64,000 nucleotides of DNA. Source: Scyliorhinus canicula (taxonomy: Eukaryota). Below are positions 38,101 to 62,470 of this stretch, piece by piece (within the stretch, counting starts at the first letter, position 1; each line of letters opens with the position of its first letter). Where the stretch lies: contig NC_052151.1 of NCBI RefSeq assembly GCF_902713615.1, positions 201,775,703 to 201,839,702 on the forward strand, written 5' to 3'. Position numbers and translations under genes: made by a program. The notes below the pieces were generated by a model. That model searched no databases and was not told the origin of the DNA. It was given only the letters and a program-made list of their open reading frames with translations.

Positions 38101-39288
38101 TCATCCCCTTGAACGCCTCAGCATGGACTTCAAAGGGCCCCTCCCCTTCTCCGACTGAAACACGTACTTCCTGAACGTGGTCGATGAATACTCCAGATTT
38201 CCCTTCGCCATCCCATGCCCCGCTATGACGTCTGCCACAGTCATCAAGGCTTACGTCCACAGTGACCAGGGATCCTCCTTTATGAGCGATGAGCTGCGTC
38301 AGTTCCTGCTCAGCAAGGGCATTGCCTCGAGCAGGATGACCAGCTACAACCCCCGGGGAAACGGGCAGGTGGAGAGGGATAACGGGACGGTCTGGAAGGC
38401 CGTCCTGCTGACCCTACGCTCTAAAACATCTCCCGGTCTCCCGCTGGCAGGAGGTCCTCCCTGACACGCTCCACTCCATCCAATCGCTACTCTGCACTGC
38501 GACTAATGAAACCCCCCATAAACGTCTCCTTGCCTTCCCTAGGAAGTCCACCTCCGGGGTTTCGCTCCCAACATGGCTGGCAGCTCCAGGACCCGTTCTC
38601 CTCCGCAAAGACGTGCGGCTACACAAGGCGGACCCGTTGGTCAAAAGGGTACAGCTGCTGCATGCGAACCACGTGGCGTACCCCGACGGCCACCAAGTCG
38701 TAGTATCCCTCGGGGACCTGGCACCAGCTGGTTCCCCCCCCCCCTCCAATTGCCCCGGTGCCACCCATCCTCCCCCAGCGCACCTCACTACAGCCCCCGC
38801 TTCAGAACGATCTGTCCTCCCATTGGTTCCACCAGGGGATGAGGATGAGCACTACAAGCTCCCGGAGTCACAGGCGACCAAGCCGGCGCCTGCATCACCA
38901 CCGGGACAGCGGCGCTCACAGCGGAGGATCAAGGCACCTGACTGGCTGAATTTGTAATCTTTCACCAGACTGTCAACTTTAAATTCTCACATACCTGTAA
39001 ATAGTTTTTCCACCATCCCCGCTGGACTCCTTTTTTCACAGGGGGGTGAATGTGGTAGTCACCACTGTTTGTATAATACGTGTATTGGAGGTAATACGGT
39101 AAGGCTCCTGTACTACAGGTACAGGGGTAGATCGCTGCCTGCTGGCTCCGCCCAGTAGGCAGAGTATAAATGTGTGTGCTCACCGAGGTGCAGCCATTTC
39201 AGCAGCAGCTGCAGGAGGCACCACATCTCTGCTTAATAAAGCCTCGATTATTCTTGACTCTCGTCTCATGATAATTGATAGTGCAAGA
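35111..39288 (+). mobile_element. Near full-length defective Gypsy retrotransposon (5' LTR 35111-35321; 3' LTR from 39051)
   Basis: gag MDLRIKLDRL...CYFC..KH..C..CGKKGH..VC; protease LLDSGST; RT YLDNITI; RNase H ESDASD..RPVAFFSR; integrase DFKGPL, VDEYSRF, HSDQG, YNPRGNGQVER; PPT AGGGGGGTGAA; many frameshifts and deletions. Confidence 0.95.
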
Positions 39289-39416: not shown

Positions 39417-39468
39417 ATGGCAACGATCTTCAACCTGCTCTGTGTCTCCCTTTCTGCTTTCCGTATTG
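39417..39468 (+). CDS. Gene B exon 1: signal peptide
   Basis: MATIFNLLCVSLSAFRI+G with strong donor G|GTAAGA; phase 1 joins TT at 62150 to give Val in frame with the IgV exon. Confidence 0.72.
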
Positions 39469-39950
39469 GTAAGAAATATCATTTATAATCCATTCTGTTT
39501 TTGAAAATAGTGATCAGTCTGTAGGCCCGGCAAAGTGTTTCCAGTGTCGAAAGACCATTTAACCCTGCCGTAGCAGAATCTACTCGACCGCACCCTGAAG
39601 CAAGTCGCATTCACTCTATTCACCATCTTTCTCTCTCCCTCCCTTGCCGCCCTCGCTGTCTTCCTCTTTCTCTGTCACTGTCTCTCTCTCTCTCTCTTTC
39701 CCTCTCGCACTCACTTTATGAGCCTTTACTTCATTTACGAGAAGTGTTCATGTCTCACCACATCCTGCCAATGAGGTTTATTGAAAGAAATGCCACCATT
39801 ACGGACAAACATTTTTTGTTCCATTTCCACGACTACAAACCGCACCAGAAGTTGTTTCAGATTAATTTGGTGCTTCAAAGTAAAAGTTAACAATACCAAC
39901 AAAATCAGATTATTCAGGTGGAATAATTATTTGCTGCCAGAAAATATATT

Positions 39951-42900
39951 TTCTGTGTCTAACCCCGTGCTACATCTGTCCAGGAAATGTTTGATGCGGA
40001 CAGTGCAGAGGGAGCTTTACTCTGTATCTAACCCCATGCTGTACCTGTCCTGTGAGTGTTTGATGGGGACTGTGTCGAGGGAGCTTTACTCTGTATCTAA
40101 CCGCATGCTGTACCTGGCCTGGGAGTGTTTGATGGGGACAGTGTAGAGGGAGCTTTACTCTGTATCTAACCCCGTGCTGTACCTGTCCTGGGAGTTTTTG
40201 ATGGGGAAAGTGTAGAGGGAGCTTTACTCTGTATCTAACCTCATGCTCTACCAGGTCGGGGAGTGTTTGATGGGGAAAGTTAGAGGGAGCTTTACTCTGT
40301 ATCTAACCCCGTGATATACCTGTCCTGGGAGTGTTTGACGGGGACAGTGTAGAGGGAGCTTTACTCTGTATCTAACCCCGTGCTGTACCTGTCCTGTGAG
40401 TGTTTGATGGGGACAGTGTCGAGGGAGCTTTACCCTGTATCTAACCCCATGCTGTACCTGGCCTGGGAGTGTTTGATGGGGACAGTGTAGAGGGAGCTTT
40501 ACTCTTTATCTAACCCCGTGCTGTACCTGTCCTGGGAGTGTTTGATGGGGACAGTGTAGAGGGAGCTTTACTCTTTATCTAACCCCGTGCTGTACCTGTC
40601 CTGGGAGTGTTTGATGGGGACAGTGTAGAGGGAGCTTTACTCTGTATCTAACCTGTCCTGAGAGTGTTTGATGGGGACAGTGTAGAGGGTGCTTTTCTCT
40701 GTATCTAACCCCATGTTGTACCTGTCCTGGGAGTGTTTGATGGGGACAATATAGAGGGAGCTTTACTCTGTATCTAACCCCGTGCTGTACCAGTCCTGGG
40801 AGTGTTTGATGGGGAATGTTAGAGGGAGCATTACTCTGTATCTAACCCCGTGCTATACCTGTCCTGGGAGTGTTTGATGGGGATAGTGTAGAGGGAGCTT
40901 TATCCTGTATCTAACCCCGTGCTGTACCTGTCCTGGGAGTGTTTGATGGGGATAGTGTAGTGGGAGCTTTACTCTGTATCTAACCCCGTGCTGTACCTGT
41001 CCTGGGAGTTTTTGATGGGGACAGTGTAGAGGGAGCTTTACTCTGTATCTAAGCCCGTGCTGTTCCTGTCCTGGGAATATTTGATGGGGACAGTGTGGAG
41101 GGAGCTTTACTCTGTATCTAACCCCGTGCTGTACCTGTCCTGGGAGTGTTTGATGGGGACAGTGTCGAGGGAGTTTTGCTCTGCATCTAACCCCGTGCTG
41201 TACCTGTCCTGGGAGTGATTGATGGGGACAGTGTAGAGGGAGCTTTACTCTGTATCTAGCTCCGTGCTGTATCTGTCCTGGGAGTGTTTGATGGGGGCAG
41301 TGTCGAGGGAGCTTTACTCTGTATCTAACCCCATTCTGTACCTGTCCTGGGAGTATTTGATGGGGACAGTGTAGCGGGTGCTTTACTCTGTATCTAACCC
41401 CGTGCTGTACCTGTCCATGGAGTGTTTGATGGGGACAGTGCAGAGGGAGCTTTACTCTGTATCTAACCCCGTGCTGTACCTGTCCTGGGAGTGTTTGATG
41501 GGGACAGTGTAGAGGGAGCTTTACTCTGTATCTAACCCCGTGTTGTACCTGTCCTGGGAGTGTTTGATGGGGACAGTGTAGAGGGAGCTTTACTCTGTAC
41601 CTTACCCCGTGCTGTACCTGTCCTAGGAGTGTTTGATGGGGACAGTGTAGCGGGTGCTTTACTCTGTATCTAACCCCGTGCTGTACCTGTCCTGTGAGTG
41701 TTTGATGGGGACAGTGTCGAGGGAGCTTTACTCTGTCTCTAACCCCGTGATGTACCTGTCCTGGGAGTGTTTGATGGGTGATGTACCATCAATTGGACGC
41801 GAGCCACGATGAAAGTCCAAACTTAGGCTTTAATCAGCTAGATGTTAGCCCGGTGGTCGACTGCAGAGAAAGGCCGACCGCCGGGAAGGGTCTACTTGCC
41901 TCTCGACCAATTGGTGAGCAGTCACATGACTAGTCGCAGCCAACCAGACGAGATGCACATGACCAGCCACAGCCAGTGGGAAACCAGTGCTCTGCACCAA
42001 TGGCAGTGCTCCCATTCATACCACCACAATGGGGACAGTGTCGAGGGAGTTTTACTCTGTACCTAACCCCGTGCTGTTCCTGTCCTGGGAGTGTTTGATG
42101 AGGACAGTGTCGAGGGAGTTTTACTCTATATCTAACCCTGTGCTGTACCTGTCCTGGGAGTGTTTGATGGGGACAGTGTAGAGGAAGCTTTACTCTGTAT
42201 CTAACCCCGTGCTGTACCTGTCCTGGGAGTGTTTGATGGGGACAGTGTAGAGGGAGCTTTACTCTGTATCTAACCCCGTGCTGTTCCTGCCCTGGGAGTG
42301 TTTGATGGGGACTGTGTAGAGGGAGCTTTACTCTGTATCTAACCCCGTGCTGTACCTGTCCTGGGAGTGTTTGATGGGGACAGTGTCGAGGGAGCTTTAC
42401 TCTGTATCTAACCCCATGCTGTACCTGTCCTAGGAGTGATTGATGGGGACAGTGTAGAGGGAGCTTTACTCTGTATCTAACCCCGTGCTGTACCTGTCCT
42501 GTGAGTGTTTGATGGGGACAGTGTCGACGCAGCTTTAGTCTGTCTCTAACCCCGTGCTGTACGTGTCCTGGGAGTGTTTGATGGGGACAGTTACGAGGGA
42601 GCTTTACTCTTTATCTAACCCTGTGATGTACCTGTCGTGCGAGTGTTTGATGGGGACAGTGTAGCGGGTGCTTTACTCTGTATCTAACCCCGTCCTGTAC
42701 CTGTCCTGTGAGTGTTTGATGGGGACAGTGTCGAGGGAGCTTTACTCTGTATCTAACCCCGTGATGTACCTGTCCTGGGAGTGTTTGATGGGGACAGTGT
42801 CGAGGGAGCTTTACTCTGTCTCTAACCCCGTGATGTACCTGTCCTGGGAGTGTTTGATGGGTGATGTACCATCAATTGGACGCGAGCCACGATGAAAGTC

Positions 42901-45900
42901 CAAACTTAGGCTTTAATCAGCTAGATGTTAGCCCGGTGGTCGACTGCAGAGAAAGGCCGACCGCCGGGAAGGGTCTACTTGCCTCTCGACCAATTGGTGA
43001 GCAGTCACATGACTAGCCGCAGCCAATCAGACGAGATGCACATGACCAGCCAGAGCCAGTGGGAAACCAGTGCTCTGCACCAATGGCAGTGCTCCCATTC
43101 ATACCACCACAATGGGGACAGTGTCGAGGGAGTTTTACTCTGTACCTAACCCCGTGCTGTTCCTTTCCTGGGAGTGTTTGATGAGGACAGTGTCGAGGGA
43201 GCTTTACTCTATATCTAACCCTGTGCTGTACCTGTCCTGGGAGTGTTTGATGGGGACAGTGTAGAGGAAGCTTTACTCTGTATCTAACCCCGTGCTGTAC
43301 CTGTCCTGGGAGTGTTTGATGGGGACAGTGTAGAGGGAGTTTTACTCTGTATCTAACCCCGTGCTGTTCCTGTCCTGGGAGTGTTTGATGGGGACAGTGT
43401 AGAGGGAGCTTTACTCTGTATCTAACCCCGTGCTGTACCTGTCCTGGGAGTGTTTGATGGGGACAGTGTAGAGGGAGGATTACTCTGTATCTAACCCCGT
43501 GCTGTTCCTGTCCTGGGAGTGTTTGATGGGGACAGTGCAGAGGGAGCTTTACTCTGTATCTAACCCTGTGCTGTTCCTGTCCATGGAGTGTTTGATTGGG
43601 GACAGTGCAGAGGGAGCTTTACTCTGTATCTAACCCCGTGCTGTACCTATCCTGGGAGTGTTTGATGGGGACAGTGTAGAGGGAGCTTTACTCTGTATCT
43701 AACCCCGTGCTGTACCTGTCCTGGGAGTGTTTGATGGGGACAGTGTCGAGGGAGCTTTACTCTGTCTCTAACCCCGTGACGTGCCTGTCCTGGGAGTGTT
43801 TGATGGGTGATGTACCATTAATTGGACGCGAGGCACGATGAAGGTCCAAACTTAGGCTTTAATCAGCTAGATGTTAGCCCGGTGGTCGACTGCAGAGAAA
43901 GGCCGACCGCCGGGAAGGGTCTACTTGCCTCTCGACCAATTGGTGAGCAGTCACATGACTAGTCGCAGCCAATCAGACGATATGCACATGACCAGCCTGA
44001 GCCAGTGGGAAACCAGAGCTCTGCACCAATGGCAGTGCTCCCATTCATACCACCACAATGGGGACAGTGTCGATGGAGTTTTACTCTGTATCTAACCCCG
44101 TGCTGTACCTGCCCTGGGAATGTTTGATGGGGATAGTGTCGAGGGAGCTTTACTCTGTATCTAACCCCATGCTGTACCTGTCCTGGGAGTGTTTGATGGG
44201 GACAGTGTAGAAGATGCTTTACTCTGTGTCTAACCCCGCGCTGTACCTGTCCTGGGAGTGTTAATTGGGAACAGTGTAGAAGGAGCTTTATTCTTTATCT
44301 AACCCTGTGCTGTTCCTGTCCATGGAGTGTTTGATGGGGACAGTGCAGAGGGAGCTTTACTCTGTATCTAACCCTGTGCTGTTCCTGTCCTGGGAATGTT
44401 TGATGGGGACAGTGCAGAGGGAGCTTTACTCTGTATCTAACCCTGTGCTGTTCCTGTCCATGGAGTGTTTGATGGGGACAGTGCAGAGGGAGCTTTACTC
44501 TGTATCTAACCCCGTGCTGTACCTATCCTGGGAGTGTTTGATGGGGACAGTGCAGAGGGAGCTTTACTCTGTATCTAACCCCGTGCTGTACCTGTCCTGG
44601 GAGTGTTTGATGGGGACAGTGTCGAGGGAGCTTTACTCTGTCTCTAACGCCGTGACGTACCTGTCCTGGGAGTGTTTGATGGGCGATGTACCATCAATTG
44701 GACGCGAGTCACGATGAAGGTCCAAACTTAGGCTTTAGTCAGCTAGATGTTAGCCCGGTGGTCGACTGCAGAGAAAGGCCGACCGCCGGGAAGGGTCTAC
44801 TTCCCTCTCGACCAATTGGTGAGCAGTCACATGACTAGTCGCAGCCAATCAGAGGAGATGCACATGACCAGCCTGAGCCAGTGGGAAACCAGAGCTCTGC
44901 ACCAATGGCAGTGCTCCCATTCATACCACCTCAATGGGTCAGTGTCGATGGAGTTTTACTCTGTATCTAACCCCGTGCTGTTCCTGTCCTGGGAGTGTTT
45001 GATGGGGACAGTGTAGAGGGAGCTTTACTCTGTATCTAACCCCGTGCTGTACCTGCCCTGGGAATGTTTGATGGGGATAGTGTCGAGGGAGCTTTACTCT
45101 GTGTCTAACCCCGTGCTGTACCTGTCCTGGGAGTGTTAATTGGGAACAGTGTAGAAGGAGCTTTATTCTGTATCTAACCCCGTGCTGTACCTGTCCTGGG
45201 AGTGTTTGATGGGGACAGTGTAGACGGAGGATTACTCTGTATCTAACCCCGTGCTGTTCCTGTCCTGGGAGTGTTTGATGGGGACAGTGCAGAGGGAGCT
45301 TTACTCTGTATCTAACCCTGTGCTGTTCCTGTCCATGGAATGTTTGATGGGGACAGTGCAGAGGGAGCTTTACTCTGTATCTAACCCCGTGCTGTACCTA
45401 TCCTGGGAGTGTTTGATGGGGACAGTGTAGAGGGAGCTTTACTCTGTATCTAACCCCGTGCTGTTCCTGCCCTGGGAGTGTTTGATGGGGACTGTGTAGA
45501 GGGAGCTTTACTCTGTATCTAACCCCGTGCTGTACCTGTCCTGGGAGTGTTTGATGGGGACAGTGTCGAGGGAGCTTTACTCTGTATCTAACCCCATGCT
45601 GTACCTGTCCTAGGAGTGATTGATGGGGACAGTGTAGAGGGAGCTTTACTCTGTATCTAACCCCGTGCTGTACCTGTCCTGTGAGTGTTTGATGGGGACA
45701 GTGTCGACGCAGCTTTAGTCTGTCTCTAACCCCGTGCTGTACGTGTCCTGGGAGTGTTTGATGGGGACAGTTACGAGGGAGCTTTACTCTTTATCTAACC
45801 CTGTGATGTACCTGTCGTGCGAGTGTTTGATGGGGACAGTGTAGCGGGTGCTTTACTCTGTATCTAACCCCGTCCTGTACCTGTCCTGTGAGTGTTTGAT

Positions 45901-48900
45901 GGGGACAGTGTCGAGGGAGCTTTACTCTGTATCTAACCCCGTGATGTACCTGTCCTGGGAGTGTTTGATGGGGACAGTGTCGAGGGAGCTTTACTCTGTC
46001 TCTAACCCCGTGATGTACCTGTCCTGGGAGTGTTTGATGGGTGATGTACCATCAATTGGACGCGAGCCACGATGAAAGTCCAAACTTAGGCTTTAATCAG
46101 CTAGATGTTAGCCCGGTGGTCGACTGCAGAGAAAGGCCGACCGCCGGGAAGGGTCTACTTGCCTCTCGACCAATTGGTGAGCAGTCACATGACTAGCCGC
46201 AGCCAATCAGACGAGATGCACATGACCAGCCAGAGCCAGTGGGAAACCAGTGCTCTGCACCAATGGCAGTGCTCCCATTCATACCACCACAATGGGGACA
46301 GTGTCGAGGGAGTTTTACTCTGTACCTAACCCCGTGCTGTTCCTTTCCTGGGAGTGTTTGATGAGGACAGTGTCGAGGGAGCTTTACTCTATATCTAACC
46401 CTGTGCTGTACCTGTCCTGGGAGTGTTTGATGGGGACAGTGTAGAGGAAGCTTTACTCTGTATCTAACCCCGTGCTGTACCTGTCCTGGGAGTGTTTGAT
46501 GGGGACAGTGTAGAGGGAGTTTTACTCTGTATCTAACCCCGTGCTGTTCCTGTCCTGGGAGTGTTTGATGGGGACTGTGTAGAGGGAGCTTTACTCTGTA
46601 TCTAACCCCGTGCTGTACCTGTCCTGGGAGTGTTTGATGGGGACAGTGTAGAGGGAGGATTACTCTGTATCTAACCCCGTGCTGTTCCTGTCCTGGGAGT
46701 GTTTGATGGGGACAGTGCAGAGGGAGCTTTACTCTGTATCTAACCCTGTGCTGTTCCTGTCCATGGAGTGTTTGATTGGGGACAGTGCAGAGGGAGCTTT
46801 ACTCTGTATCTAACCCCGTGCTGTACCTATCCTGGGAGTGTTTGATGGGGACAGTGTAGAGGGAGCTTTACTCTGTATCTAACCCCGTGCTGTACCTGTC
46901 CTGGGAGTGTTTGATGGGGACAGTGTCGAGGGAGCTTTACTCTGTCTCTAACCCCGTGACGTGCCTGTCCTGGGAGTGTTTGATGGGTGATGTACCATTA
47001 ATTGGACGCGAGGCACGATGAAGGTCCAAACTTAGGCTTTAATCAGCTAGATGTTAGCCCGGTGGTCGACTGCAGAGAAAGGCCGACCGCCGGGAAGGGT
47101 CTACTTGCCTCTCGACCAATTGGTGAGCAGTCACATGACTAGTCGCAGCCAATCAGACGATATGCACATGACCAGCCTGAGCCAGTGGGAAACCAGAGCT
47201 CTGCACCAATGGCAGTGCTCCCATTCATACCACCACAATGGGGACAGTGTCGATGGAGTTTTACTCTGTATCTAACCCCGTGCTGTACCTGTCCTGGGAA
47301 TGTTTGATGGGGTCAGTGTCGAGGGAGCTTATCTCTGTATCCTACCCCATGCTGTACCTGTCCTCTGAGTGTTTGATGGGGACAGTGTAGAGGATGCTTT
47401 ACTCTGTGTCTAACCCCGTGCTGTACCTGTCCTGGGAGTGTTTATTGGGAACAGTGTAGAAGGAGCTTTATTCTTTATCTAACCCTGTGCTGTTCCTGTC
47501 CATGGAGTGTTTGATGGGGACAGTGCAGAGGGAGCTTTACTCTGTATCTAACCCTGTGCTGTTCCTGTCCTGGGAATGTTTGATGGGGACAGTGCAGAGG
47601 GAGCTTTACTCTGTATCTAACCCTGTGCTGTTCCTGTCCATGGAGTGTTTGATGGGGACAGTGCAGAGGGAGCTTTACTCTGTATCTAACCCCGTGCTGT
47701 ACCTATCCTGGGAGTGTTTGATGGGGACAGTGCAGAGGGAGCTTTACTCTGTATCTAACCCCGTGCTGTACCTGTCCTGGGAGTGTTTGATGGGGACAGT
47801 GTCGAGGGAGCTTTACTCTGTCTCTAACGCCGTGACGTACCTGTCCTGGGAGTGTTTGATGGGCGATGTACCATCAATTGGACGCGAGTCACGATGAAGG
47901 TCCAAACTTAGGCTTTAGTCAGCTAGATGTTAGCCCGGTGGTCGACTGCAGAGAAAGGCCGACCGCCGGGAAGGGTCTACTTCCCTCTCGACCAATTGGT
48001 GAGCAGTCACATGACTAGTCGCAGCCAATCAGAGGAGATGCACATGACCAGCCTGAGCCAGTGGGAAACCAGAGCTCTGCACCAATGGCAGTGCTCCCAT
48101 TCATACCACCTCAATGGGTCAGTGTCGATGGAGTTTTACTCTGTATCTAACCCCGTGCTGTTCCTGTCCTGGGAGTGTTTGATGGGGACAGTGTAGAGGG
48201 AGCTTTACTCTGTATCTAACCCCGTGCTGTACCTGCCCTGGGAATGTTTGATGGGGATAGTGTCGAGGGAGCTTTACTCTGTGTCTAACCCCGTGCTGTA
48301 CCTGTCCTGGGAGTGTTAATTGGGAACAGTGTAGAAGGAGCTTTATTCTGTATCTAACCCCGTGCTGTACCTGTCCTGGGAGTGTTTGATGGGGACAGTG
48401 TAGACGGAGGATTACTCTGTATCTAACCCCGTGCTGTTCCTGTCCTGGGAGTGTTTGATGGGGACAGTGCAGAGGGAGCTTTACTCTGTATCTAACCCTG
48501 TGCTGTTCCTGTCCATGGAATGTTTGATGGGGACAGTGCAGAGGGAGCTTTACTCTGTATCTAACCCCGTGCTGTACCTATCCTGGGAGTGTTTGATGGG
48601 GACAGTGCAGAGGGAGCTTTACTCTGTATCTAACCCCGTGCTGTACCTGTCCTGGGAGTGTTTGATGGGGACAGTGTCGAGGGAGCTTTACTCTGTCTCT
48701 AACCCCATGCTGTACCTGTCCTGGGAGTGTTTGATGGGGACAGTGTAGAAGATGCTTTACTCTGTGTCTAACCCCGCGCTGTACCTGTCCTGGGAGTGTT
48801 AATTGGGAACAGTGTAGAAGGAGCTTTATTCTGTATCTAACCCCGTGCTGTACCTGTCCTGGGAGTGTTTGATGGGGACAGTGTAGACGGAGCTTTTCTC

Positions 48901-51900
48901 TGTATCTAACCCCATTCTGTACCTGTCCTGGAAGTGTTTGATGGGGACAGTGTAGAAGGAGCTTTACTCTGTCTCTAACCCCGTGATGTACCTGTCCTGG
49001 GAGTGTTTGATGGGTGATGTACCATCAATTGGACGCGAGGCACGATGAAGGTCCAAACTTAGGCTTTAATCAGCTAGATGTTAGCCCGGTGGTCGACTGT
49101 AGAGAAAGGCCGACCGCCGGGAACTCTGGGTACTTATACCCCGCCAGCGAGGCGGCGTCTACTTGCCTCTCGACCAATTGGTGAGCAGTTACATGACTAG
49201 TCGCAGCCAATCAGACGAGATGCACATGACCAGCCAGAGCCAGTGGGAAACCAGTGCTCTGCACCAATGGCAGTGCTCCCATTCATACCACCACAATGGG
49301 GACAGCGTCGAGGGAGTTTTACTCTGTATCTAACCCCGTGCTGTTCCTGTCCTGGGAGTGTTTGATGGGGACAGTGTAGAGGAAGCTTTACTCTGTATCG
49401 AACCCCGTGCTGTTCCTGTCCTGGGAGTGTTTGATGGGGACAGTGTCGAGGGAGCTTTACTCTGTATCTAACCCCATGCTGTACCTGTCCTAGGAGTGTT
49501 TGATGGGGACAGTGTAGCGGGTGCTTTACTCTGTATCTAACCCCGTGCTGTACCTGTCCTGTGAGTGTTTGATGGGGACAGTGTCGACGCAGCTTTAGTC
49601 TGTCTCTAACCCCGTGCTGTACGTGTCCTGGGAGTGTTTGATGGGGACAGTTACGAGGGAGCTTTACTCTTTATCTAACCCTGTGATGTACCTGTTGTGC
49701 GAGTGTTTGATGGGGACAGTGTAGCGGGTGCTTTACTCTGTATCTAACCCCGTGCTGTTCCTGTCCTGTGAGTGTTTGATGGGGACAGTGTCGAGGGAGC
49801 TTTACTCTGTCTCTAACCCCGTGATGTACCTGTCCTGGGAGTGTTTGATGGGTGATGTACCATCAATTGGACGCGAGCCACGATGAAAGTCCAAACTTAG
49901 GCTTTAATCAGCTAGATGTTAGCCCGGTGGTCGACTGCAGAGAAAGGCCGACCGCCGGGAACTCTGGGTACTTCTACCCCGCCTCTGAGGCGGGGTCTAC
50001 TTGCCTCTCGACCAATTGGTGAGCAGTCACATGACTAGCCGCAGCCAATCAGACGAGATGCACATGACCAGCCAGAGCCAGTGGGAAACCAGTGCTCTGC
50101 ACCAATGGCAGTGCTCCCATTCATACCACCACAATGGGGACAGTGTCGAGGGAGTTTTACTCTGTACCTAACCCCGTGCTGTTCCTTTCCTGGGAGTGTT
50201 TGATGAGGACAGTGTCGAGGGAGCTTTACTCTATATCTAACCCTGTGCTGTACCTGTCCTGGGAGTGTTTGATGGGGACAGTGTAGAGGAAGCTTTACTC
50301 TGTATCTAACCCCGTGCTGTACCTGTCCTGGGAGTGTTTGATGGGGACAGTGTAGAGGGAGTTTTACTCTGTATCTAACCCCGTGCTGTTCCTGTCCTGG
50401 GAGTGTTTGATGGGGACTGTGTAGAGGGAGCTTTACTCTGTATCTAACCCCGTGCTGTACCTGTCCTGGGAGTGTTTGATGGGGACAGTGTAGAGGGAGG
50501 ATTACTCTGTATCTAACCCCGTGCTGTTCCTGTCCTGGGAGTGTTTGATGGGGACAGTGCAGAGGGAGCTTTACTCTGTGTCTAACCCCGCGCTGTACCT
50601 GTCCTGGGAGTGTTAATTGGGAACAGTGTAGAAGGAGCTTTATTCTGTATCTAACCCCGTGCTGTACCTGTCCTGGGAGTGTTTGATGGGGACAGTGTAG
50701 ACGGAGCTTTTCTCTGTATCTAACCCCATTCTGTACCTGTCCTGGAAGTGTTTGATGGGGACAGTGTAGAAGGAGCTTTACTCTGTCTCTAACCCCGTGA
50801 TGTACCTGTCCTGGGAGTGTTTGATGGGTGATGTACCATCAATTGGACGCGAGGCACGATGAAGGTCCAAACTTAGGCTTTAATCAGCTAGATGTTAGCC
50901 CGGTGGTCGACTGTAGAGAAAGGCCGACCGCCGGGAACTCTGGGTACTTATACCCCGCCAGCGAGGCGGCGTCTACTTGCCTCTCGACCAATTGGTGAGC
51001 AGTTACATGACTAGTCGCAGCCAATCAGACGAGATGCACATGACCAGCCAGAGCCAGTGGGAAACCAGTGCTCTGCACCAATGGCAGTGCTCCCATTCAT
51101 ACCACCACAATGGGGACAGCGTCGAGGGAGTTTTACTCTGTATCTAACCCCGTGCTGTTCCTGTCCTGGGAGTGTTTGATGGGGACAGTGTAGAGGAAGC
51201 TTTACTCTGTATCTAACCCCGTGCTGTTCCTGTCCTGGGAGTGTTTGATGGGGACAGTGTCGAGGGAGCTTTACTCTGTATCTAACCCCATGCTGTACCT
51301 GTCCTAGGAGTGTTTGATGGGGACAGTGTAGCGGGTGCTTTACTCTGTATCTAACCCCGTGCTGTACCTGTCCTGTGAGTGTTTGATGGGGACAGTGTCG
51401 ACGCAGCTTTAGTCTGTCTCTAACCCCGTGCTGTACGTGTCCTGGGAGTGTTTGATGGGGACAGTTACGAGGGAGCTTTACTCTTTATCTAACCTTGTGA
51501 TGTACCTGTTGTGCGAGTGTTTGATGGGGACAGTGTAGCGGGTGCTTTACTCTGTATCTAACCCCGTGCTGTTCCTGTCCTGTGAGTGTTTGATGGGGAC
51601 AGTGTCGAGGGAGCTTTACTCTGTCTCTAACCCCGTGATGTACCTGTCCTGGGAGTGTTTGATGGGTGATGTACCATCAATTGGATGCGAGCCACGATGA
51701 AAGTCCAAACTTAGGCTTTAATCAGCTAGATGTTAGCCCGGTGGTCGACTGCAGAGAAAGGCCGACCGCCGGGAACTCTGGGTACTTCTACCCCGCCTCT
51801 GAGGCGGGGTCTACTTGCCTCTCGACCAATTGGTGAGCAGTCACATGACTAGCCGCAGCCAATCAGACGAGATGCACATGACCAGCCAGAGCCAGTGGGA

Positions 51901-54900
51901 AACCAGTGCTCTGCACCAATGGCAGTGCTCCCATTCATACCACCACAATGGGGACAGTGTCGAGGGAGTTTTACTCTGTACCTAACCCCGTGTTGTTCCT
52001 TTCCTGGGAGTGTTTGATGAGGACAGTGTCGAGGGAGCTTTACTCTATATCTAACCCTGTGCTGTACCTGTCCTGGGAGTGTTTGATGGGGACAGTGTAG
52101 AGGAAGCTTTACTCTGTATCTAACCCCGTGCTGTACCTGTCCTGGGAGTGTTTGATGGGGACAGTGTAGAGGGAGTTTTACTCTGTATCTAACCCCGTGC
52201 TGTTCCTGTCCTGGGAGTGTTTGATGGGGACTGTGTAGAGGGAGCTTTACTCTGTATCTAACCCCGTGCTGTACCTGTCCTGGGAGTGTTTGATGGGGAC
52301 AGTGTAGAGGGAGGATTACTCTGTATCTAACCCCGTGCTGTTCCTGTCCTGGGAGTGTTTGATGGGGACAGTGCAGAGGGAGCTTTACTCTGTATCTAAC
52401 CCTGTGCTGTTCCTGTCCATGGAGTGTTTGATTGGGGACAGTGCAGAGGGAGCTTTACTCTGTATCTAACCCCGTGCTGTACCTATCCTGGGAGTGTTTG
52501 ATGGGGACAGTGTAGAGGGAGCTTTACTCTGTATCTAACCCCGTGCTGTACCTGTCCTGGGAGTGTTTGATGGGGACAGTGTCGAGGGAGCTTTACTCTG
52601 TCTCTAACCCCGTGACGTGCCTGTCCTGGGAGTGTTTGATGGGTGATGTACCATTAATTGGACGCGAGGCACGATGAAGGTCCAAACTTAGGCTTTAATC
52701 AGCTAGATGTTAGCCCGGTGGTCGACTGCAGAGAAAGGCCGACCGCCGGGAAGGGTCTACTTGCCTCTCGACCAATTGGTGAGCAGTCACATGACTAGTC
52801 GCAGCCAATCAGACGAGATGCACATGACCAGCCTGAGCCAGTGGGAAACCAGAGCTCTGCACCAATGGCAGTGCTCCCATTCATACCACCACAATGGGGA
52901 CAGTGTCGATGGAGTTTTACTCTGTATCTAACCCCGTGCTGTACCTGCCCTGGGAATGTTTGATGGGGATAGTATCGAGGGGGCTTTACTCTGTATCTAA
53001 CCCCATGCTGTACCTGTCCTGGGAGTGTTTGATGGGGACAGTGTAGAAGATGCTTTACTCTGTGTCTAACCCCGCGCTGTACCTGTCCTGGGAGTGTTAA
53101 TTGGGAACAGTGTAGAAGGAGCTTTATTCTGTATCTAACCCTGTGCTGTTCCTGTCCATGGAGTGTTTGATGGGGACAGTGCAGAGGGAGCTTTACTCTG
53201 TATCTAACCCTGTGCTGTTCCTGTCCTGGGAATGTTTGATGGGGACAGTGCAGAGGGAGCTTTACTCTGTATCTAACCCTGTGCTGTTCCTGTCCATGGA
53301 GTGTTTGATGGGGACAGTGCAGAGGGAGCTTTACTCTGTATCTAACCCCGTGCTGTACCTATCCTGGGAGTGTTTGATGGGGACAGTGCAGAGGGAGCTT
53401 TACTCTGTATCTAACCCCGTGCTGTACCTGTCCTGGGAGTGTTTGATGGGGACAGTGTCGAGGGAGCTTTACTCTGTCTCTAACCCCGTGACGTACCTGT
53501 CCTGGGAGTGTTTGATGGACGATGTACCATCAATTGGACGCGAGTCACGATGAAGGTCCAAACTTAGGCTTTAGTCAGCTAGATGTTAGCCCGATGGTCG
53601 ACTGCAGAGAAAGGCCGACCGCCGGGAAGGGTCTACTTCCCTCTCGACCAATTGGTGAGCAGTCACATGACTACTCGCAGCCAATCAGAGGAGATGCACA
53701 TGACCAGCCTGAGCCAGTGGGAAACCAGAGCTCTGCACCAATGGCAGTGCTCCCACTCATACCACCTCAATGGGTCAGTGTCGATGGAGTTTTACTCTGT
53801 ATCTAACCCCGTGCTGTTCCTGTCCTGGGAGTGTTTGATGGGGACAGTGTAGAGGGAGCTTTACTCTGTATCTAACCCCGTGCTGTACCTGCCCTGGGAA
53901 TGTTTGATGGGGATAGTGTCGAGGGAGCTTTACTCTGTGTCTAACCCCGTGCTGTACCTGTCCTGGGAGTGTTAATTGGGAACAGTGTAGAAGGAGCTTT
54001 ATTCTGTATCTAACCCCGTGCTGTACCTGTCCTGGGAGTGTTTGATGGGGACAGTGTAGACGGAGGATTACTCTGTATCTAACCCCGTGCTGTTCCTGTC
54101 CTGGGAGTGTTTGATGGGGACAGTGCAGAGGGAGCTTTACTCTGTATCTAACCCTGTGCTGTTCCTGTCCATGGAATGTTTGATGGGGACAGTGCAGAGG
54201 GAGCTTTACTCTGTATCTAACCCCGTGCTGTACCTATCCTGGGAGTGTTTGATGGGGACAGTGCAGAGGGAGCTTTACTCTGTATCTAACCCCGTGCTGT
54301 ACCTGTCCTGGGTGTGTTTGATGGGGACAGTGTCGAGGGAGCTTTACTCTGTCTCTAACCCCATGCTGTACCTGTCCTGGGAGTGTTTGATGGGGACAGT
54401 GTAGAAGGATGCTTTACTCTGTATCTAACCCCGCGCTGTACCTGTCCTGGGAGTGTTTAATTGGGAACAGTGTAGAAGGAGCTTTATTCTGTATCTAACC
54501 CCGTGCTGTACCTGTCCTGGGAGTGTTTGATGGGGACAGTGTCGACGGAGCTTTTCTCTGTATCTAACCCCATTCTGTACCTGTCCTGGAAGTGTTTGAT
54601 GGGGACAGTGTAGAAGGAGCTTTACTCTGTCTCTAACCCCGTGATGTACCTGTCCTGGGAGTGTTTGATGGGTGATGTACCATCAATTGGACGCGAGGCA
54701 CGATGAAGGTCCAAACTTAGGCTTTAATCAGCTAGATGTTAGCCCGGTGGTCGACTGCAGAGAAAGGCCGACCGCCGGGAAGGGTCTACTTGCCTCTCGA
54801 CCAATTGGTGAGCAGTCATATGACTAGTCGCAGCCAATCAGACGAGATGCACATGACCAGCCTGAGCCAGTGGGAAACCAGAGCTCTGCACCAATGGCAG

Positions 54901-57900
54901 TGCTCCCATTCATACCACCACAATGGGGACAGTGTCGATGGAGTTTTACTCTGTATCTAACCCCGTGCTGTTCCTGTCCTGGGAGTGTTTGATGGGGACA
55001 GTGTAGAGGGAGCTTTAATCTGTATCTAACCCCGTGCTGTACCTGTCCTGGGAGTGTTTGATGGGGACAGTGTAGAGGGAGCTTTACTCTGTATCTAACC
55101 CCGTGCTGTACCTGCCCTGGGAATGTTTGATGGGGATAGTGTCGAGGGAGCTTTACTCTGTATCTAACCCCATGCTGTACCTGTCCTGGGAGTGTTTGAT
55201 GGGGACAGTGTAGAAGATGCTTTACTCTGTGTCTAACCCCGCGCTGTACCTGTCCTGGGAGTGTTAATTGGGAACAGTGTAGAAGGAGCTTTATTCTGTA
55301 TCTAACCCTGTGCTGTTCCTGTCCATGGAGTGTTTGATGGGGACAGTGCAGAGGGAGCTTTACTCTGTATCTAACCCTGTGCTGTTCCTGTCCTGGGAGT
55401 GTTTGATGGGGACAGTGCAGAGGGAGCTTTACTCTGTATCTAACCCTGTGCTGTTCCTGTCCATGGAGTGTTTGATGGGGACAGTGCAGAGGGAGCTTTA
55501 CTCTGTATCTAACCCCGTGCTGTTCCTGTCCTGGGAGTGTTTGATGGGGACAGTGTAGAGGGAGCTTTACTCTGTATCTAACCCCGTGCTGTACCTGTCC
55601 TGGGAGTGTTTGATGGGGACAGTGTAGAGGGAGCTTTACTCTGTATCTAACCCCGTGCTGTACCTGCCCTGGGAATGTTTGATGGGGATAGTGTCGAGGG
55701 AGCTTTACTCTGTATCTAACCCCATGCTGTACCTGTCCTGGGAGTGTTTGATGGGGACAGTGTAGAAGATGCTTTACTCTGTGTCTAACCCCGCGCTGTA
55801 CCTGTCCTGGGAGTGTTAATTGGGAACAGTGTAGAAGGAGATTTATTCTGTATCTAACCCTGTGCTGTTCCTGTCCATGGAGTGTTTGATGGGGACAGTG
55901 CAGAGGGAGCTTTACTCTGTATCTAACCCTGTGCTGTTCCTGTCCTGGGAGTGTTTGATGGGGACAGTGCAGAGGGAGCTTTACTCTGTATCTAACCCTG
56001 TGCTGTTCCTGTCCATGGAGTGTTTGATGGGGACAGTGCAGAGGGAGCTTTACTCTGTATCTAACCCCGTGCTGTACCTATCCTGGGAGTGTTTGATGGG
56101 GACAGTGCAGAGGGAGCTTTACTCTGTATCTAACCCCGTGCTGTACCTGTCCTGGGAGTGTTTGATGGGGACAGTGTCGAGGGAGCTTTACTCTGTCTCT
56201 AACCCCGTGACGTACCTGTCCTGGGAGTGTTTGATGGGCGATGTACCATCAATTGGACGCGAGTCACGATGAAGGTCCAAACTTAGGCTTTAGTCAGCTA
56301 GATGTTAGCCCGGTGGTCGACTGCAGAGAAAGGCCGACCGCCGGGAAGGGTCTACTTCCCTCTCGACCAATTGGTGAGCAGTCACATGACTAGCCGCAGC
56401 CAATCAGACGAGATGCACATGACCAGCCTGAGCCAGTGGGAAACCAGAGCTCTGCACCAATGGCAGTGCTCCCATTCATACCACCTCAATGGGGGACAGT
56501 GTCGATGGAGTTTTACTCTGTATCTAACCCCGTGCTGTTCCTGTCCTGGGAGTGTTTGATGGGGACAGTGTAGAGGGAGCTTTACTCTGTATCTAACCCC
56601 GTGCTGTACCTGCCCTGGGAATGTTTGATGGGGATAGTGTCGAGGGAGCTTTACTCTGTATCTAACCCCGTGCTGTACCTGTCCTGGGAGTGTTAATTGG
56701 GAACAGTGTAGAAGGAGCTTTATTCTGTATCTAACCGCGTGCTGTACCTGTCCTGGGAGTGTTTGATGGGGACAGTGTAGACGGAGCTTTACTCTGTATC
56801 GAACCCCGTGCTGTACGTGTCCTGTGAGTGTTTGATGGGGACAGTTACGAGGGAGCTTTACTCTGTCTCTAACCCCGTGATGTACCTGTCCTGGGAGTGT
56901 TTGATGGGTGATGTACCATCAATTGGACGCGAGGCACAATGAAGGTCCAAACTTAGGCTTTAATCAGCTAGATGTTAGCCCGGTGGTCGACTGTAGAGAA
57001 AGGCCGACCGCCGGGAACTCTGGGTACTTATACCCCGCCAGCGAGGCGGCGTCTACTTGCCTCTCGACCAATTGGTGAGCAGTTACATGACTAGTCGCAG
57101 CCAATCAGACGAGATGCACATGACCAGCCAGAGCCAGTGGGAAACCAGTGCTCTGCACCAATGGCAGTGCTCCCATTCATACCACCACAATGGGGACAGC
57201 GTCGAGGGAGTTTTACTCTGTATCAAACCCCGTGCTGTTCCTGTCCTGGGAGTGTTTGATGGGGACAGTGTAGAGGAAGCTTTACTCTGTATCTAACCCC
57301 GTGCTGTTCCTGTCCTGGGAGTGTTTGATGGGGACAGTGTCGAGGGAGCTTTACTCTGTATCTAACCCCATGCTGTACCTGTCCTAGGAGTGTTTGATGG
57401 GGACAGTGTAGCGGGTGCTTTACTCTGTATCTAACCTCGTGCTGTACCTGTCCTGTGAGTGTTTGATGGGGACAGTGTCGACGCAGCTTTAGTCTGTCTC
57501 TAACCCCGTGCTGTACGTGTCCTGGGAGTGTTTGATGGGGACAGTTACGAGGGAGCTTTACTCTTTATCTAACCCTGTGATGTACCTGTCGTGCGAGTGT
57601 TTGATGGGGACAGTGTAGCGGGTGCTTTACTCTGTATCTAACCCCGTGCTGTACCTGTCCTGTGAGTGTTTGATGGGGACAGTGTCGAGGGAGCTTTACT
57701 CTGTCTCTAACCCCGTGATGTACCTGTCCTGGGAGTGTTTGATGGGTGATGTACCATCAATTGGACGCGAGCCACGATGAAAGTCCAAACTTAGGCTTTA
57801 ATCAGCTAGATGTTAGCCCGGTGGTCGACTGCAGAGAAAGGCCGACCGCCGGGAACTCTGGGTACTTCTACCCCGCCTCTGAGGCGGGGTCTACTTGCCT

Positions 57901-60900
57901 CTCGACCAATTGGTGAGCAGTCACATGACTAGCCGCAGCCAATCAGACGAGATGCACATGACCAGCCAGAGCCAGTGGGAAACCAGTGCTCTGCACCAAT
58001 GGCAGTGCTCCCATTCATACCACCACAATGGGGACAGTGTCGAGGGAGTTTTACTCTGTACCTAACCCCGTGCTGTTCCTGTCCTGGGAGTGTTTGATGA
58101 GGACAGTGTCGAGGGAGCTTTACTCTATATCTAACCCTGTGCTGTACCTGTCCTGGGAGTGTTTGATGGGGACAGTGTAGAGGAAGCTTTACTCTGTATT
58201 TAACCCCGTGCTGTACCTGTCCTGGGAGTGTTTGATGGGGACAGTGTGGAGGGAGCTTTTCTCTGTATCTAACCCCGTGCTGTTCCTGTCCTGGGAGTGT
58301 TTGATGGGGACTGTGTAGAGTGAGCTTTACTCTGTATCTAACCCCGTGCTGTACCTGTCCTGGGAGTGTTTGATGGGGACAGTGTAGAGGGAGGATTACT
58401 CTGTATCTAACCCCGTGCTGTTCCGGTCCTGGGAGTGTTTGATGGGGAGAGTGCAGAGGGAGCTTTACTCTGTATCTAACCCTGTGCTGTTCCTGTCCAT
58501 GGAGTGTTTGATTGGGGACAGTGCAGAGGGAGATTTACTCTGCATCTAACCCCGTGCTTTACCTATCCTGGGAGTGTTTGATGGGGACAGTGTAGAGGGA
58601 GCTTTACTCTGTATCTAACCCCGTGCTGTACCTGTCCTGGGAGTGTTTGATGGGGACAGTGTCGAGGGAGCTTTACTCTGTCTCTAACCCCGTGACGTGC
58701 CTGTCCTGGGAGTGTTTGATGGGTGATGTACCATCAATTGGACGCGAGGCACGATGAATGTCCAAACTTAGGCTTTAATCAGCTAGATGTTAGGCCGGTG
58801 GTCGACTGCAGAGAAAGGCCGACCGCCGGGAAGGGTCTACTTGCCTCTCGACCAATTGGTGAGCAGTCATATGACTAGTCGCAGCCAATCAGACGAGATG
58901 CACATGACCAGCCTGAGCCAGTGGGAAACCAGAGCTCTGCACCAATGGCAGTGCTCCCATTCATACCACCACAATGGGGACAGTGTCGATGGAGTTTTAC
59001 TCTGTATCTAACCCCGTGCTGTTCCTGTCCTGGGAGTGTTTGATGGGGACAGTGTAGAGGGAGCTTTAATCTGTATCTAACCCCGTGCTGTACCTGTCCT
59101 GGGAGTGTTTGATGGGGACAGTGTAGAGGGAGCTTTACTCTGTATCTAACCCCGTGCTGTACCTGCCCTGGGAATGTTTGATGGGGATAGTGTCGAGGGA
59201 GCTTTACTCTGTATCTAACCCCATGCTGTACCTGTCCTGGGAGTGTTTGATGGGGACAGTGTAGAAGATGCTTTACTCTGTGTCTAACCCCGCGCTGTGC
59301 CTGTCCTGGGAGTGTTAATTGGGAACAGTGTAGAAGGAGCTTTATTCTGTATCTAACCCTGTGCTGTTCCTGTCCATGGAGTGTTTGATGGGGACAGTGC
59401 AGAGGGAGCTTTACTCTGTATCTGACCCTGTGCTGTTCCTGTCCTGGGAGTGTTTGATGGGGACAGTGCAGAGGGAGCTTTACTCTGTATCTAACCCTGT
59501 GCTGTTCCTGTCCATGGAGTGTTTGATGGGGACAGTGCAGAGGGAGCTTTACTCTGTATCTAACCCCGTGCTGTTCCTGTCCTGGGAGTGTTTGATGGGG
59601 ACAGTGTAGAGGGAGCTTTACTCTGTATCTAACCCCGTGCTGTACCTGTCCTGGGAGTGTTTGATGGGGACAGTGTAGAGGGAGCTTTACTCTGTATCTA
59701 ACCCCGTGCTGTACCTGCCCTGGGAATGTTTGATGGGGATAGTGTCGAGGGAGCTTTACTCTGTATCTAACCCCATGCTGTACCTGTCCTGGGAGTGTTT
59801 GATGGGGACAGTGCAGAGGGAGCTTTACTCTGTATCTAACCCCGTGCTGTACCTGTCCTGGGAGTGTTTGATGGGGACAGTGTCGAGGGAGCTTTACTCT
59901 GTCTCTAACCCCGTGACGTACCTGTCCTGGGAGTGTTTGATGGGCGATGTACCATCAATTGGACGCGAGTCACGATGAAGGTCCAAACTTAGGCTTTAGT
60001 CAGCTAGATGTTAGCCCGGTGGTCGACTGCAGAGAAAGGCCGACCGCCGGGAAGGGTCTACTTCCCTCTCGACCAATTGGTGAGCAGTCACATGACTAGT
60101 CGCAGCCAATCAGACGAGATGCACATGACCAGCCTGAGCCAGTGGGAAACCAGAGCTCTGCACCAATGGCAGTGCTCCCATTCATACCACCTCAATGGGG
60201 ACAGTGTCGATGGAGTTTTACTCTGTATCTAACCCCGTGCTGTTCCTGTCCTGGGAGTGTTTGATGGGGACAGTGTAGAGGGAGCTTTACTCTGTATCTA
60301 ACCCCGTGCTGTACCTGCCCTGGGAATGTTTGATTGGGATAGTGTCGAGGGAGCTTTACTCTGTATCTAACCCCGTGCTGTACCTGTCCTGGGAGTGTTA
60401 ATTGGGAACAGTGTAGAAGGAGCTTTATTCTGTATCTAACCCCGTGCTGTACCTGTCCTGGGAGTGTTTGATGGGGACAGTGTAGACGGAGCTTTACTCT
60501 GTATAGAACCCCGTGCTGTACGTGTCCTGTGAGTGTTTGATGGGGACAGTTGCGAGGGAGCTTTACTCTGTCTCTAACCCCGTGATGTACCTGTCCTGGG
60601 AGTGTTTGATGGGTGATGTACCATCAATTGGACGCGAGGCACAATGAAGGTCCAAACTTAGGCTTTAATCAGCTAGATGTTAGCCCGGTGGTCGACTGTA
60701 GAGAAAGGCCGACCGCCGGGAACTCTGGGTACTTATACCCCGCCAGCGAGGCGGCGTCTACTTGCCTCTCGACCAATTGGTGAGCAGTTACATGACTAGT
60801 CGCAGCCAATCAGACGAGATGCACATGACCAGCCAGAGCCAGTGGGAAACCAGTGCTCTGCACCAATGGCAGTGCTCCCATTCATACCACCACAATGGGG

Positions 60901-61953
60901 ACAGTGTCGAGGGAGTTTTACTCTGTATCTAACCCCGTGCTGTTCCTATCCTGGGAGTGTTTCATGGGGACAGTGTAGAGGAAGCTTTACTCTGTATCTA
61001 ACCCCGTGCTGTTCCTGTCCTGGGTGTGTTTGATGGGGACAGTGTCGAGGGAGCTTTTCTCTGTATCTAACCCCATTCTGTACCTGTCCTGGAAGTGTTT
61101 GATGGGGACAGTGTTGAGGGAGCTTTACTCTGTATCTAACCCCATGCTGTACCTGTCCTGGGAGTGTTCGATGGGGAAAGTGTAGAGAGTGCTTTACTCT
61201 GTATCTAATCCCGTGCTGTACCTGCCCTGGGAATGTTTGATGGGGATAGTGTCGAAGGAGCTTTACCCTGTATCTAACCCCATGCTGTACCTGTCCTGGG
61301 AGTGTTTGATGGGGACAGTGTAGAGGGAGCTTTACTCTGTATCTAACCCAGTGCTCTACCTGTCCCGTGAGTGTTTGATGGGGACAGTGTAGACGGAGTT
61401 TTACTCTGTATCTAGCCCCGTGCTGTTCCTGTCCTGGGATGGTTTGATGGGGACAGTGTCGAGGGAGCTTTACTCTGTATCTAACCCCGTGCTGTCCCTG
61501 TCCTGGTAGTGTTTGATGGGGACAGTGTAGAGGGTGCTTTACTCTGTATCTAACCCCGTGCTGTACCTGTCCTGGGAGTGTTTGATGGCGACAGTGTAGA
61601 GGGAGCTTTACTCCGTATCTAACCCCGTGCTGTACCTGTCCTCGGACTGTTTGATGGGGTGAATGTAGAGGGAGCTTTACTCTGTATCTAAAGCCGTCCT
61701 GTACCTGTCCTGGGTGTTTGATGTGGACAGGGTAGAGGGAGCTTTACTCTGTATCTAACCCTGCTGTACCTGTCCTGGGAGTGTTTGATGAGGACAGTGT
61801 AGAGGGAGCTTTACTCTGTACCTAACCCCGTGCTGTACCTGTACTGGGAGTGTTTGATGAGGACAGTGTAGAGGGAGCTTTACTCTGTATCTAACCCCGT
61901 GCTGTACCTGTTCTATGAGTGTTTGATGGAGACGGTGTAGAGGGAGATTTACT
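39951..61953 (+). repeat. About 22-kb 69-bp satellite array (roughly 240 monomers) with higher-order repeats
   Basis: Monomer CTGTATCTAACCCCGTGCTGTACCTGTCCTGGGAGTGTTTGATGGGGACAGTGTAGAGGGAGCTTTACT; block duplications at offsets of 3180, 1814 and about 3705-4051 bp. Confidence 0.97.
41779..60894 (-). mobile_element. 20 co-amplified copies of one Gypsy solo LTR (250 or 281 bp) embedded in the satellite
   Basis: Each copy reads TGATGTACC...CACCACA between ATGGG direct repeats; the reverse complement has TGTGG start, CCAAT boxes, GGGTATAAGT, ATTAAA and AATTGATGGTACATCA end. Starts near 41779, 42862, 43808, 44684, 46042, 46988, 47864, 49015, 49853, 50829, 51667, 52644, 53520, 54673, 56239, 56909, 57747, 58724, 59945 and 60614. 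Confidence 0.88.
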
Positions 61954-62149
61954 CGATATGTTACTCCTACACAGGTTTATTGCACATTTCCATAAATTGC
62001 ATCCGTGTCTTCATTTCCAAAGTAATTGCTTGTCTTGCAGTCTTTGAATCGTAATTGTGATCCTCGGTTCAATATCTCTGAAATTCTGCCTCCAGTCACT
62101 GAGCTTGTCTCGTTCCGCACTCACTGACTGTCTCCTCTTGTTCCCTCAG

Positions 62150-62470
62150 TTCAGAATCAGGCTGCCCGTCTCCCTGTGAATGGATCCCTGGGTCAGTCAG
62201 TCTCCCTGTCTCCGGTAATCCCACATCGATTGATGGACATCGAGGTTATCTGGAAACAATCTTCACGCAGTCTCAGAATAGCACGATACAGCAAGGAACA
62301 TGTCAGTTACGTTGGGTCTGAGGATTACCAGAAACGGATCAAATTTCATCCTGGGAACTTCAGTCTGCAAATCAATGACTTACAGAGAGAGGATGCTGGG
62401 AGTTATGAGGTGTTTTTAACAAGAGATTCAGGAGAGGAAACTACAGAGACCATTCAACTGGACGTGTACG
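62150..62470 (+). CDS. Gene B exon 2: IgV domain, CD2/SLAM-family-like
   Basis: Acceptor CTCCTCTTGTTCCCTCAG|T and donor TACG|GTAAGT; 321 nt, phase 1/1; VNGSLGQSVSL..IEVIWK...RIKFHPGNFSLQINDLQREDAGSYEV...IQLDVY, cysteine-free V set. Confidence 0.9.

Follow-up and report, generated by a model that had tools for sequence, protein, structure and literature searches.

Intron 1 of a gene for a SLAM-family receptor of the small-spotted catshark, Scyliorhinus canicula, is almost filled by a 22-kb array of a 69-bp satellite, in which a single insertion, very likely a long terminal repeat (LTR), has been multiplied to 20 copies by turnover of the array itself. The analysis covered a window of 64,000 nucleotides from RefSeq assembly GCF_902713615.1 (contig NC_052151.1, positions 201,775,703 to 201,839,702 of the forward strand), and all coordinates below are those of this window. 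Every copy of the insert lies at the same base of the satellite monomer, between the same duplicated pentanucleotide and next to monomers carrying the same private variants, and multi-kilobase blocks containing both insert and satellite recur along the array. The account that we consider likely is that a retroelement inserted antisense to the gene, was reduced to a solo LTR, and was then carried along as a passenger of recent unequal crossing-over.

Tandem Repeats Finder, run on the 64-kb window, reports the satellite with a period of 69 bp on the plus strand from approximately 39950 to 61954. The array holds approximately 243 monomers and is broken at intervals by 20 inserts of non-satellite DNA, which account for 24% of it; its two edges, 39950–41778 and 60895–61954, are free of inserts. 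Identity between adjacent satellite monomers is only about 90%. There are no ambiguous bases in the window (0 N), hence the sequence is gap-free. In our literature search, we found no paper in which the sequence of this satellite is printed. Approximately three further monomers of the same satellite, in inverted orientation and with at most 93% identity to those of the array, are present at 34384–34590, 5.3 kb upstream of the array, so the satellite is not confined to the intron. A tandem array with a 31-bp period (34598–35108, 16.5 copies) directly abuts these upstream monomers.

A BLAST search of the window with the first insert returned exactly 20 copies, all as plus-strand matches and all within 41779–60894; a very permissive search also found none in the rest of the window. 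Thirteen of the copies are 250 bp long and seven are 281 bp long, and the distance from the start of one to the start of the next is 0.67–1.57 kb. Divergence among the copies is 0–6%. Their alignment contains 28 substituted columns and one 31-column indel, from which five classes emerge; along the array they run A A' B C A' B C D E D E B C B' C D E B' C D. All copies are listed here on the minus strand, which is the proposed sense strand of the LTR. Copy 1 (class A, 250 bp) occupies 41779–42028, copy 2 (class A', 250 bp, identical to copy 5) 42862–43111, copy 3 (class B, 250 bp, identical to copy 6) 43808–44057, and copy 4 (class C, 250 bp, identical to copy 7 and without ATTAAA) 44684–44933. 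They are followed by copy 5 (class A', 46042–46291), copy 6 (class B, 46988–47237) and copy 7 (class C, without ATTAAA, 47864–48113). Copy 8 (class D, 281 bp, 49015–49295) carries minus-strand CCAAT/ATTGG boxes, TATAAG and ATTAAA, copy 9 (class E, 281 bp, 49853–50133) has an altered TATA motif, copy 10 (class D, 50829–51109) is identical to copy 8, and copy 11 (51667–51947) again belongs to class E. Further along lie copy 12 (class B, 52644–52893), copy 13 (class C, without ATTAAA, 53520–53769), copy 14 (class B', 54673–54922) and copy 15 (class C, without ATTAAA, 56239–56488). The last five are copy 16 (class D, 56909–57189, identical to copy 20), copy 17 (class E, 57747–58027, identical to copy 9), copy 18 (class B', 58724–58973), copy 19 (class C, without ATTAAA, 59945–60194) and copy 20 (class D, 60614–60894).

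All 20 inserts interrupt the satellite at an identical position in the monomer. At the first of them (41779–42028, 250 bp), satellite sequence ending in GTTTGATGGG gives way to the insert, which opens with TGATGTACC and closes with ACCACCACA, and the satellite resumes with ATGGGGACAG; the same GTTTGATGGG precedes, and ATGGG(G)ACAG comes after, 20 of 20 copies. A 5-bp duplication, ATGGG, flanks every copy, and ATGGG is itself sequence of the satellite monomer. The gaps between successive inserts correspond to whole monomers (6, 8, 9, 10, 12, 13, 14, 16 or 19 of them) plus approximately 5 bp. The monomers on either side are likewise shared, the one upstream of every insert having the variants CTGTCTCTAAC and CGTGAYGTRCC and the one downstream having the variant GGAGTTTTACT (20/20 in each case). 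Among the ~243 monomers, these three variants adjoin an insert in 20 of 27, 20 of 22 and 20 of 26 occurrences, respectively, and the common forms at the same three positions, with 165, 88 and 141 occurrences, never do. An "empty" site, in which the two flank monomers stand side by side with no insert between them, was found nowhere in the array. Independent integrations are implausible, because 20 of them would not share the same base of ~243 monomers. The shared target duplication together with the private flank variants makes the single origin of the inserts unambiguous.

Comparison of the array with itself revealed how this single insertion was multiplied. Duplicated blocks were found at no fewer than five offsets, each spanning approximately 2–2.4 units: 3180 bp (98.2% identity over 3.8 kb), 5656 bp (99.1% over 3.0 kb), 1814 bp (97.4% over 2.6 kb), 6080 bp (96.5% over 3.1 kb) and 3706 bp (94.2% over 2.5 kb). 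The spacing from B' to B' is 4051 bp. Similarly, the satellite stretches between LTRs form families of equal length, each tied to a particular LTR class. The stretch that follows A' or E has 10 monomers and is 98.3–99.9% alike in four of five instances and 97% alike in the fifth; other families have 9 monomers between B and C, 13 after C, 8 between D and E, and 6 between C and D. Blocks are 94–99% alike and inter-LTR stretches 98–99.9%, compared with ~90% for adjacent monomers, and the array thus has the character of a higher-order repeat, yet with no single regular head-to-tail unit: duplications are nested within one another in a mosaic. Overall, one integration was co-amplified with its flanking monomers by block duplication, and we infer that this occurred through unequal crossing-over, or tandem segmental duplication, within the satellite. 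The original prediction for this stretch had been drawn from the sequence alone and had proposed array turnover in place of retrotransposition, citing a common monomer position with a common ATGGG duplication. It had also listed an ordered recurrence of variant classes, blocks of 3180, 1814 and about 3.7–4.05 kb, and a spacing of about 0.7–1.6 kb; each of these features held up on measurement, with the private flanks and the multi-kilobase blocks pointing to the same process.

The anatomy of the insert is that of a putative LTR. On the minus strand, the 281-bp class D copy contains, as motif matches only, ATTGG/CCAAT at positions 28, 85 and 115–122, TATAAG at 158, ATTAAA at 226 and CA at 249, with the end at 281. 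This order would be the U3-R-U5 layout of an LTR, in which, judging from the spacing of the motifs, R may measure approximately 60 nt and U5 approximately 30 nt. The ends are TG..CA in 15 of 20 copies; the five class C copies start with CG and end with TCA, and these are derived changes. The 5-bp ATGGG falls within the 4–6 bp expected of a target-site duplication. On anatomy alone, we judge it very likely that the insert is an LTR with the minus strand as its sense strand.

Several other origins were considered for the insert and rejected. An origin from a short interspersed element (SINE) or an RNA gene was discarded on finding no transfer RNA (tRNA), no Rfam family at E<=1, TG..CA ends and no tail. 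A DNA transposon or miniature inverted-repeat transposable element (MITE) was discarded since the terminal inverted repeat is not significant, with 58% of shuffled sequences reaching the score of the best local alignment between the two ends. A degenerate LTR retroelement that neighbors the array (35208–38461) was rejected as the source of the amplified LTR because the two have no sequence similarity. An open reading frame (ORF) of 136 amino acids running across satellite and insert gave no match in an exact look-up, and a literature search on shark LTR elements and retroviruses yielded nothing specific.

The host gene was identified from the exons on either side of the array. An ORF at 62128–62475 encodes an immunoglobulin (Ig) V-set domain of SLAM/CD2 type (Pfam V-set, E=2e-9, with additional matches to the 2B4 (Receptor_2B4) and SLAM families), and the closest solved relatives of this exon in the PDB are SLAMF5, SLAMF6, CD48 and CD2. 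A HMMER search returned a protein that is 100% identical to the V-set query over the shared residues. The matched cluster includes XP_038656728.1, annotated as "signaling lymphocytic activation molecule-like isoform X1" of Scyliorhinus canicula, 336 amino acids long and encoded on a 226-Mb chromosome of GCA_902713615.2. Its N-terminus, MATIFNLLCVSLSAFRI-V-QNQAARL..., corresponds to the codons at 39417–39467 plus one base, joined by a phase-1 splice to 62150, and the protein matches exons 1 and 2 exactly, identifying the gene as one for a SLAM/CD2-family receptor. The coding part of exon 1 (39417–39468, plus strand) consists of 17 codons and one base in phase 1, translates as the leader peptide MATIFNLLCVSLSAFRI, and is directly followed by a GT donor at 39469. 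Exon 2 (62150–62470, plus strand) encodes the V-set domain and is in phase 1 at both ends. Between them lies intron 1 (39469–62149, plus strand, 22,681 bp), for which the splice model agrees with the annotated protein, and the array fills approximately 97% of it, a fraction computed, like the hexamer counts below, on 39471–62149. The sense strand of the LTR is antisense to the SLAM-like gene and points toward exon 1, so that the predicted placement in an immune gene intron, with the LTRs aimed back at the first exon, was borne out. The hexamers AATAAA and ATTAAA occur 0 times on the sense strand of the intron and 35 times on its minus strand; as the intron is repeat DNA, this contrast carries no statistical weight. 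Antisense orientation, together with the lack of sense-strand poly(A) hexamers, probably accounts for the gene's tolerance of such a long repeat in this intron. NCBI annotates a second product for the gene (291 amino acids; XP_038656729.1 and XP_038656730.1), which starts at a Met inside exon 2 (62233) and so lacks both the leader peptide and the initial 27 residues encoded by exon 2. Because this start lies inside the V-set exon, the transcripts of the shorter product need a different 5' end.

The LTR copies differ in what they have retained of their motifs. Each copy has three CCAAT motifs on the plus strand (two in copy 1) and two on the minus strand, along with 11–15 CpG dinucleotides. TATAAG is present only in the four class D copies and in altered form in the three class E copies. 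The 31-bp piece that contains the TATA motif is missing from 13 of 20 copies, with the same boundaries in all 13, and ATTAAA has been lost from the five class C copies. The ratio of observed to expected CpG is 0.63 in the LTR copies, 0.27 in the satellite and 0.37–0.47 in other parts of the window, and CpG transitions make up 4 of the 28 variable columns among the LTR copies. Within each duplicated block, mismatches are far rarer in the LTR than in the satellite (0/750 versus 71/3056, for example), a raw gap of 5–40 times. The satellite mismatches are clustered in runs of monomers with ~10% divergence, between long cores with 0–1 mismatch, and the variance-to-mean ratio of mismatch counts per monomer is 4–5.7. 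These divergent runs consist of monomers that are not orthologous, located where blocks end and at exchange joints. The idea of purifying selection on the LTR was therefore rejected: in orthologous cores, LTR and satellite match equally closely, with mismatches close to zero, and so give no hint of selection on the LTR. The latest duplications are very recent. The copies are best seen as passengers in which promoter and poly(A) motifs are being lost, and they can be explained with no appeal to a function.

The insert might instead be DNA of another kind, for example a non-autonomous DNA transposon that generated the 5-bp duplication or a piece of DNA taken up during break repair, which was later amplified in the same way. 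Such a reading would fit an insert that is seen here on its own, apart from other members of a family and from the internal region, primer-binding site and polypurine tract of an intact element, that at 250–281 bp is short, and whose terminal bases show an inverted match in 12 of the first 20. That inverted match, however, is no better than in shuffled sequence, no tRNA or SINE signal is present, and the TG..CA ends, the 5-bp duplication and the succession of CCAAT, TATAAG, ATTAAA and CA on one strand all argue for an LTR, leaving a non-LTR insert improbable. A different concern is that part of the copy number is an assembly artefact, namely that nearly identical blocks were falsely repeated in tandem when long reads were assembled. 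Some block cores are indeed identical over ~1.9 kb, and several pairs of LTRs are identical. We nevertheless regard an artefact as extremely unlikely, given that the window is gap-free, with 0 N, that patchy differences and unequal monomer numbers distinguish the duplicated blocks, that the five LTR classes follow a non-trivial order, and that the NCBI gene model spans the intron.

The array could also be read as a regulatory module, with the LTRs serving as antisense promoters or as an NF-Y-type enhancer cluster whose number tunes the SLAM-like gene, or providing the 5' end of the short isoform. The CCAAT boxes in all copies and the minus-strand layout from TATA motif to poly(A) signal would suit this role, as would the elevated CpG ratio of the LTRs relative to the satellite and the small number of CpG transitions among the copies, and the second product, which starts inside exon 2, implies that another 5' end exists somewhere. 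Set against these are the scarcity of TATAAG (4 of 20 copies), the absence of the 31-bp piece from 13 copies and of ATTAAA from five, a level of LTR conservation no greater than that of orthologous satellite cores, and a copy divergence of 0–6%, which is too small for the kept motifs to be meaningful. Taken together, these points make a regulatory module quite improbable. That the LTRs escape germline methylation and act jointly as copy-number-variable NF-Y-type enhancers or antisense promoters, or as the source of the short isoform's 5' end, we consider very unlikely; if they did, unequal crossing-over would tune the expression of a SLAM-family receptor among individual catsharks. The original prediction had described a periodic array of 20 antisense promoter cassettes, each with about three CCAAT motifs and CpGs. 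The motif counts were accurate, but the description as promoter cassettes overstated the state of the copies, and the functions suggested for them found no support; in the duplicated blocks, the LTR is spared no more than orthologous satellite is.

A few observations weigh against the account of a solo LTR carried as a passenger. The identification as an LTR draws on anatomy alone. In exact-pattern scans of metagenome and viral contigs, an invariant 22-mer of the LTR and a 26-mer of the satellite were unmatched, and a protein search with an ORF lying in the insert gave no match. The CpG richness of the LTRs could reflect either youth or an escape from germline methylation, and an escape would leave room for activity. 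Finally, the presence or absence of the 31-bp piece conflicts with the rest of the copy tree, so that an exchange between copies, by crossover or conversion, must be assumed in addition to block duplication. For example, the 31-bp piece is the sole difference between class E and class A', and the same 10-monomer stretch comes after both.

With these points taken into account, a passenger solo LTR remains the likely explanation, and the following history would produce the present array. The 69-bp satellite would already have been in intron 1 of the receptor gene before the insertion. One LTR retroelement would have integrated in one monomer, antisense to the gene, generating the 5-bp target duplication ATGGG, and recombination between the two LTRs of the element would have left a solo LTR before amplification began. 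Repeated out-of-register unequal crossing-over or tandem segmental duplication would then have copied the LTR along with its neighboring monomers. The outcome would be the observed 20 copies, in a mosaic of units that each consist of the LTR plus 6, 8, 9, 10 or 13 monomers.

Mobile elements and foreign repeats that are copied along with the satellite around them have been reported in other lineages. In the CEN180 centromeres of Arabidopsis, ATHILA elements and solo LTRs were duplicated after integration, which the authors credit to the mechanism that makes satellite higher-order repeats (bioRxiv 10.1101/2021.05.30.446350). As in the catshark, a retroelement or solo LTR within a satellite was copied on the same chromosome with its flanking monomers. 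In contrast, the Arabidopsis cases lie in plant centromeres with 178-bp monomers and comprise only five duplications, of two copies each, 8.9–538 kb apart, whereas the catshark array packs 20 copies within 19 kb of a vertebrate gene intron, with the LTR making up nearly a quarter of the array. Post-integration copying of retrotransposons and solo LTRs by a higher-order-repeat process had thus already been reported, and the idea of an undescribed system, for which the array was first put forward as a candidate, is not supported. In the Drosophila simulans clade, Rsp-like repeats within the 1.688 satellite spread with flanking monomers by unequal exchange (bioRxiv 10.1101/846238). There too, a foreign repeat in an older satellite hitch-hikes within the locus and moves as a higher-order unit; unlike in the catshark, the insert is another satellite, joined by microhomology, with no integrase-type target duplication. 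In rye, solo LTRs are strongly enriched alongside subtelomeric arrays. Catshark monomers resemble higher-order repeats of the alpha-satellite type in being ~90% alike within blocks of several monomers that are themselves 94–99.9% alike, and differ from them in lacking a single period, in forming a mosaic of at least five offsets, and in not being centromeric. Bovine satellite 1.711b, attributed to work by Streeck in 1982, is said to carry an LTR-like insertion with a target duplication in every unit; the insert is reportedly ~1.2 kb long, and the satellite a regular pericentromeric composite on a genome scale and not intragenic. A further parallel is HERV-K(C4) in intron 9 of the human complement C4 genes, an antisense intronic retroviral insertion whose copy number varies through tandem duplication of a segment. 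There, duplication takes in the entire gene module and the inserted element is an almost complete provirus, whereas in the catshark duplication is confined to intronic satellite units with a solo LTR. In summary, what sets the catshark case apart from known ones is its setting, its density and its clear record of intermediate steps; in kind it is the same.

As a whole, the window abounds in minisatellites, and it also contains further remnants of mobile elements. The degenerate retroelement mentioned above is the internal region of an LTR retroelement (35208–38461, plus strand) just upstream of exon 1 of the SLAM-like gene. Its Pfam matches follow the order gag-like (DUF7083), aspartyl protease, reverse transcriptase, RNase H and integrase core, and they fall in all three reading frames; the frame shifts no fewer than four times, and one or more in-frame stops are present. 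On either side of it, segments at 35128–35276 and 39076–39243 are 67% similar over 174 bp under permissive scoring; a stricter repeat search returned no pair flanking the retroelement. These segments might be remnants of its LTRs. If 39076–39243 were a decayed 3' LTR, the promoter and the leader exon (39417–39468) of the SLAM-like gene would lie at or just beyond it. Fragments of non-LTR retrotransposons with reverse-transcriptase matches are found on the minus strand at 27129–28550 and 5159–5662. A further candidate fragment on the plus strand, 31116–32245, has two long ORFs with no Pfam match, one of which contains a GDFN-type motif that may correspond to the endonuclease of long interspersed nuclear elements (LINEs). 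Tandem arrays include one of 47-bp units at 9979–10513 (11.5 copies, 95%) and one of 33-bp units at 11422–12064 (19.5 copies, 91%). A C-rich stretch at 12000–19500 shows extreme strand asymmetry, with a GC skew down to -0.76, and holds several more tandem arrays, namely a 24/48/70-bp array at 15362–16082, a loose run of TAACCCC-like 7-mers at 16569–16844, a 20-bp array at 16637–17727, and a nested 45/90/351-bp array at 17867–19462 (97% at period 351). The stretch appears to have a telomere-like flavor. A scan for bacterial-type promoters and terminators, which is irrelevant to this locus, gave no match.

The array provides a base-level record of how satellite turnover can multiply a fragment of a mobile element with no transposition, and the LTR classes are natural markers that expose the order of the unequal crossovers. 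It also holds a lesson for annotation: the 20 LTR matches represent one insertion, and counts or ages of LTR families that ignore this are inflated. The finding would matter more only if expression or chromatin showed the copies to be active. For the catshark, it demonstrates that a vertebrate immune-receptor gene can bear a 22-kb repeat in the intron that separates the leader and V exons, and the length of this repeat is probably variable in the population.

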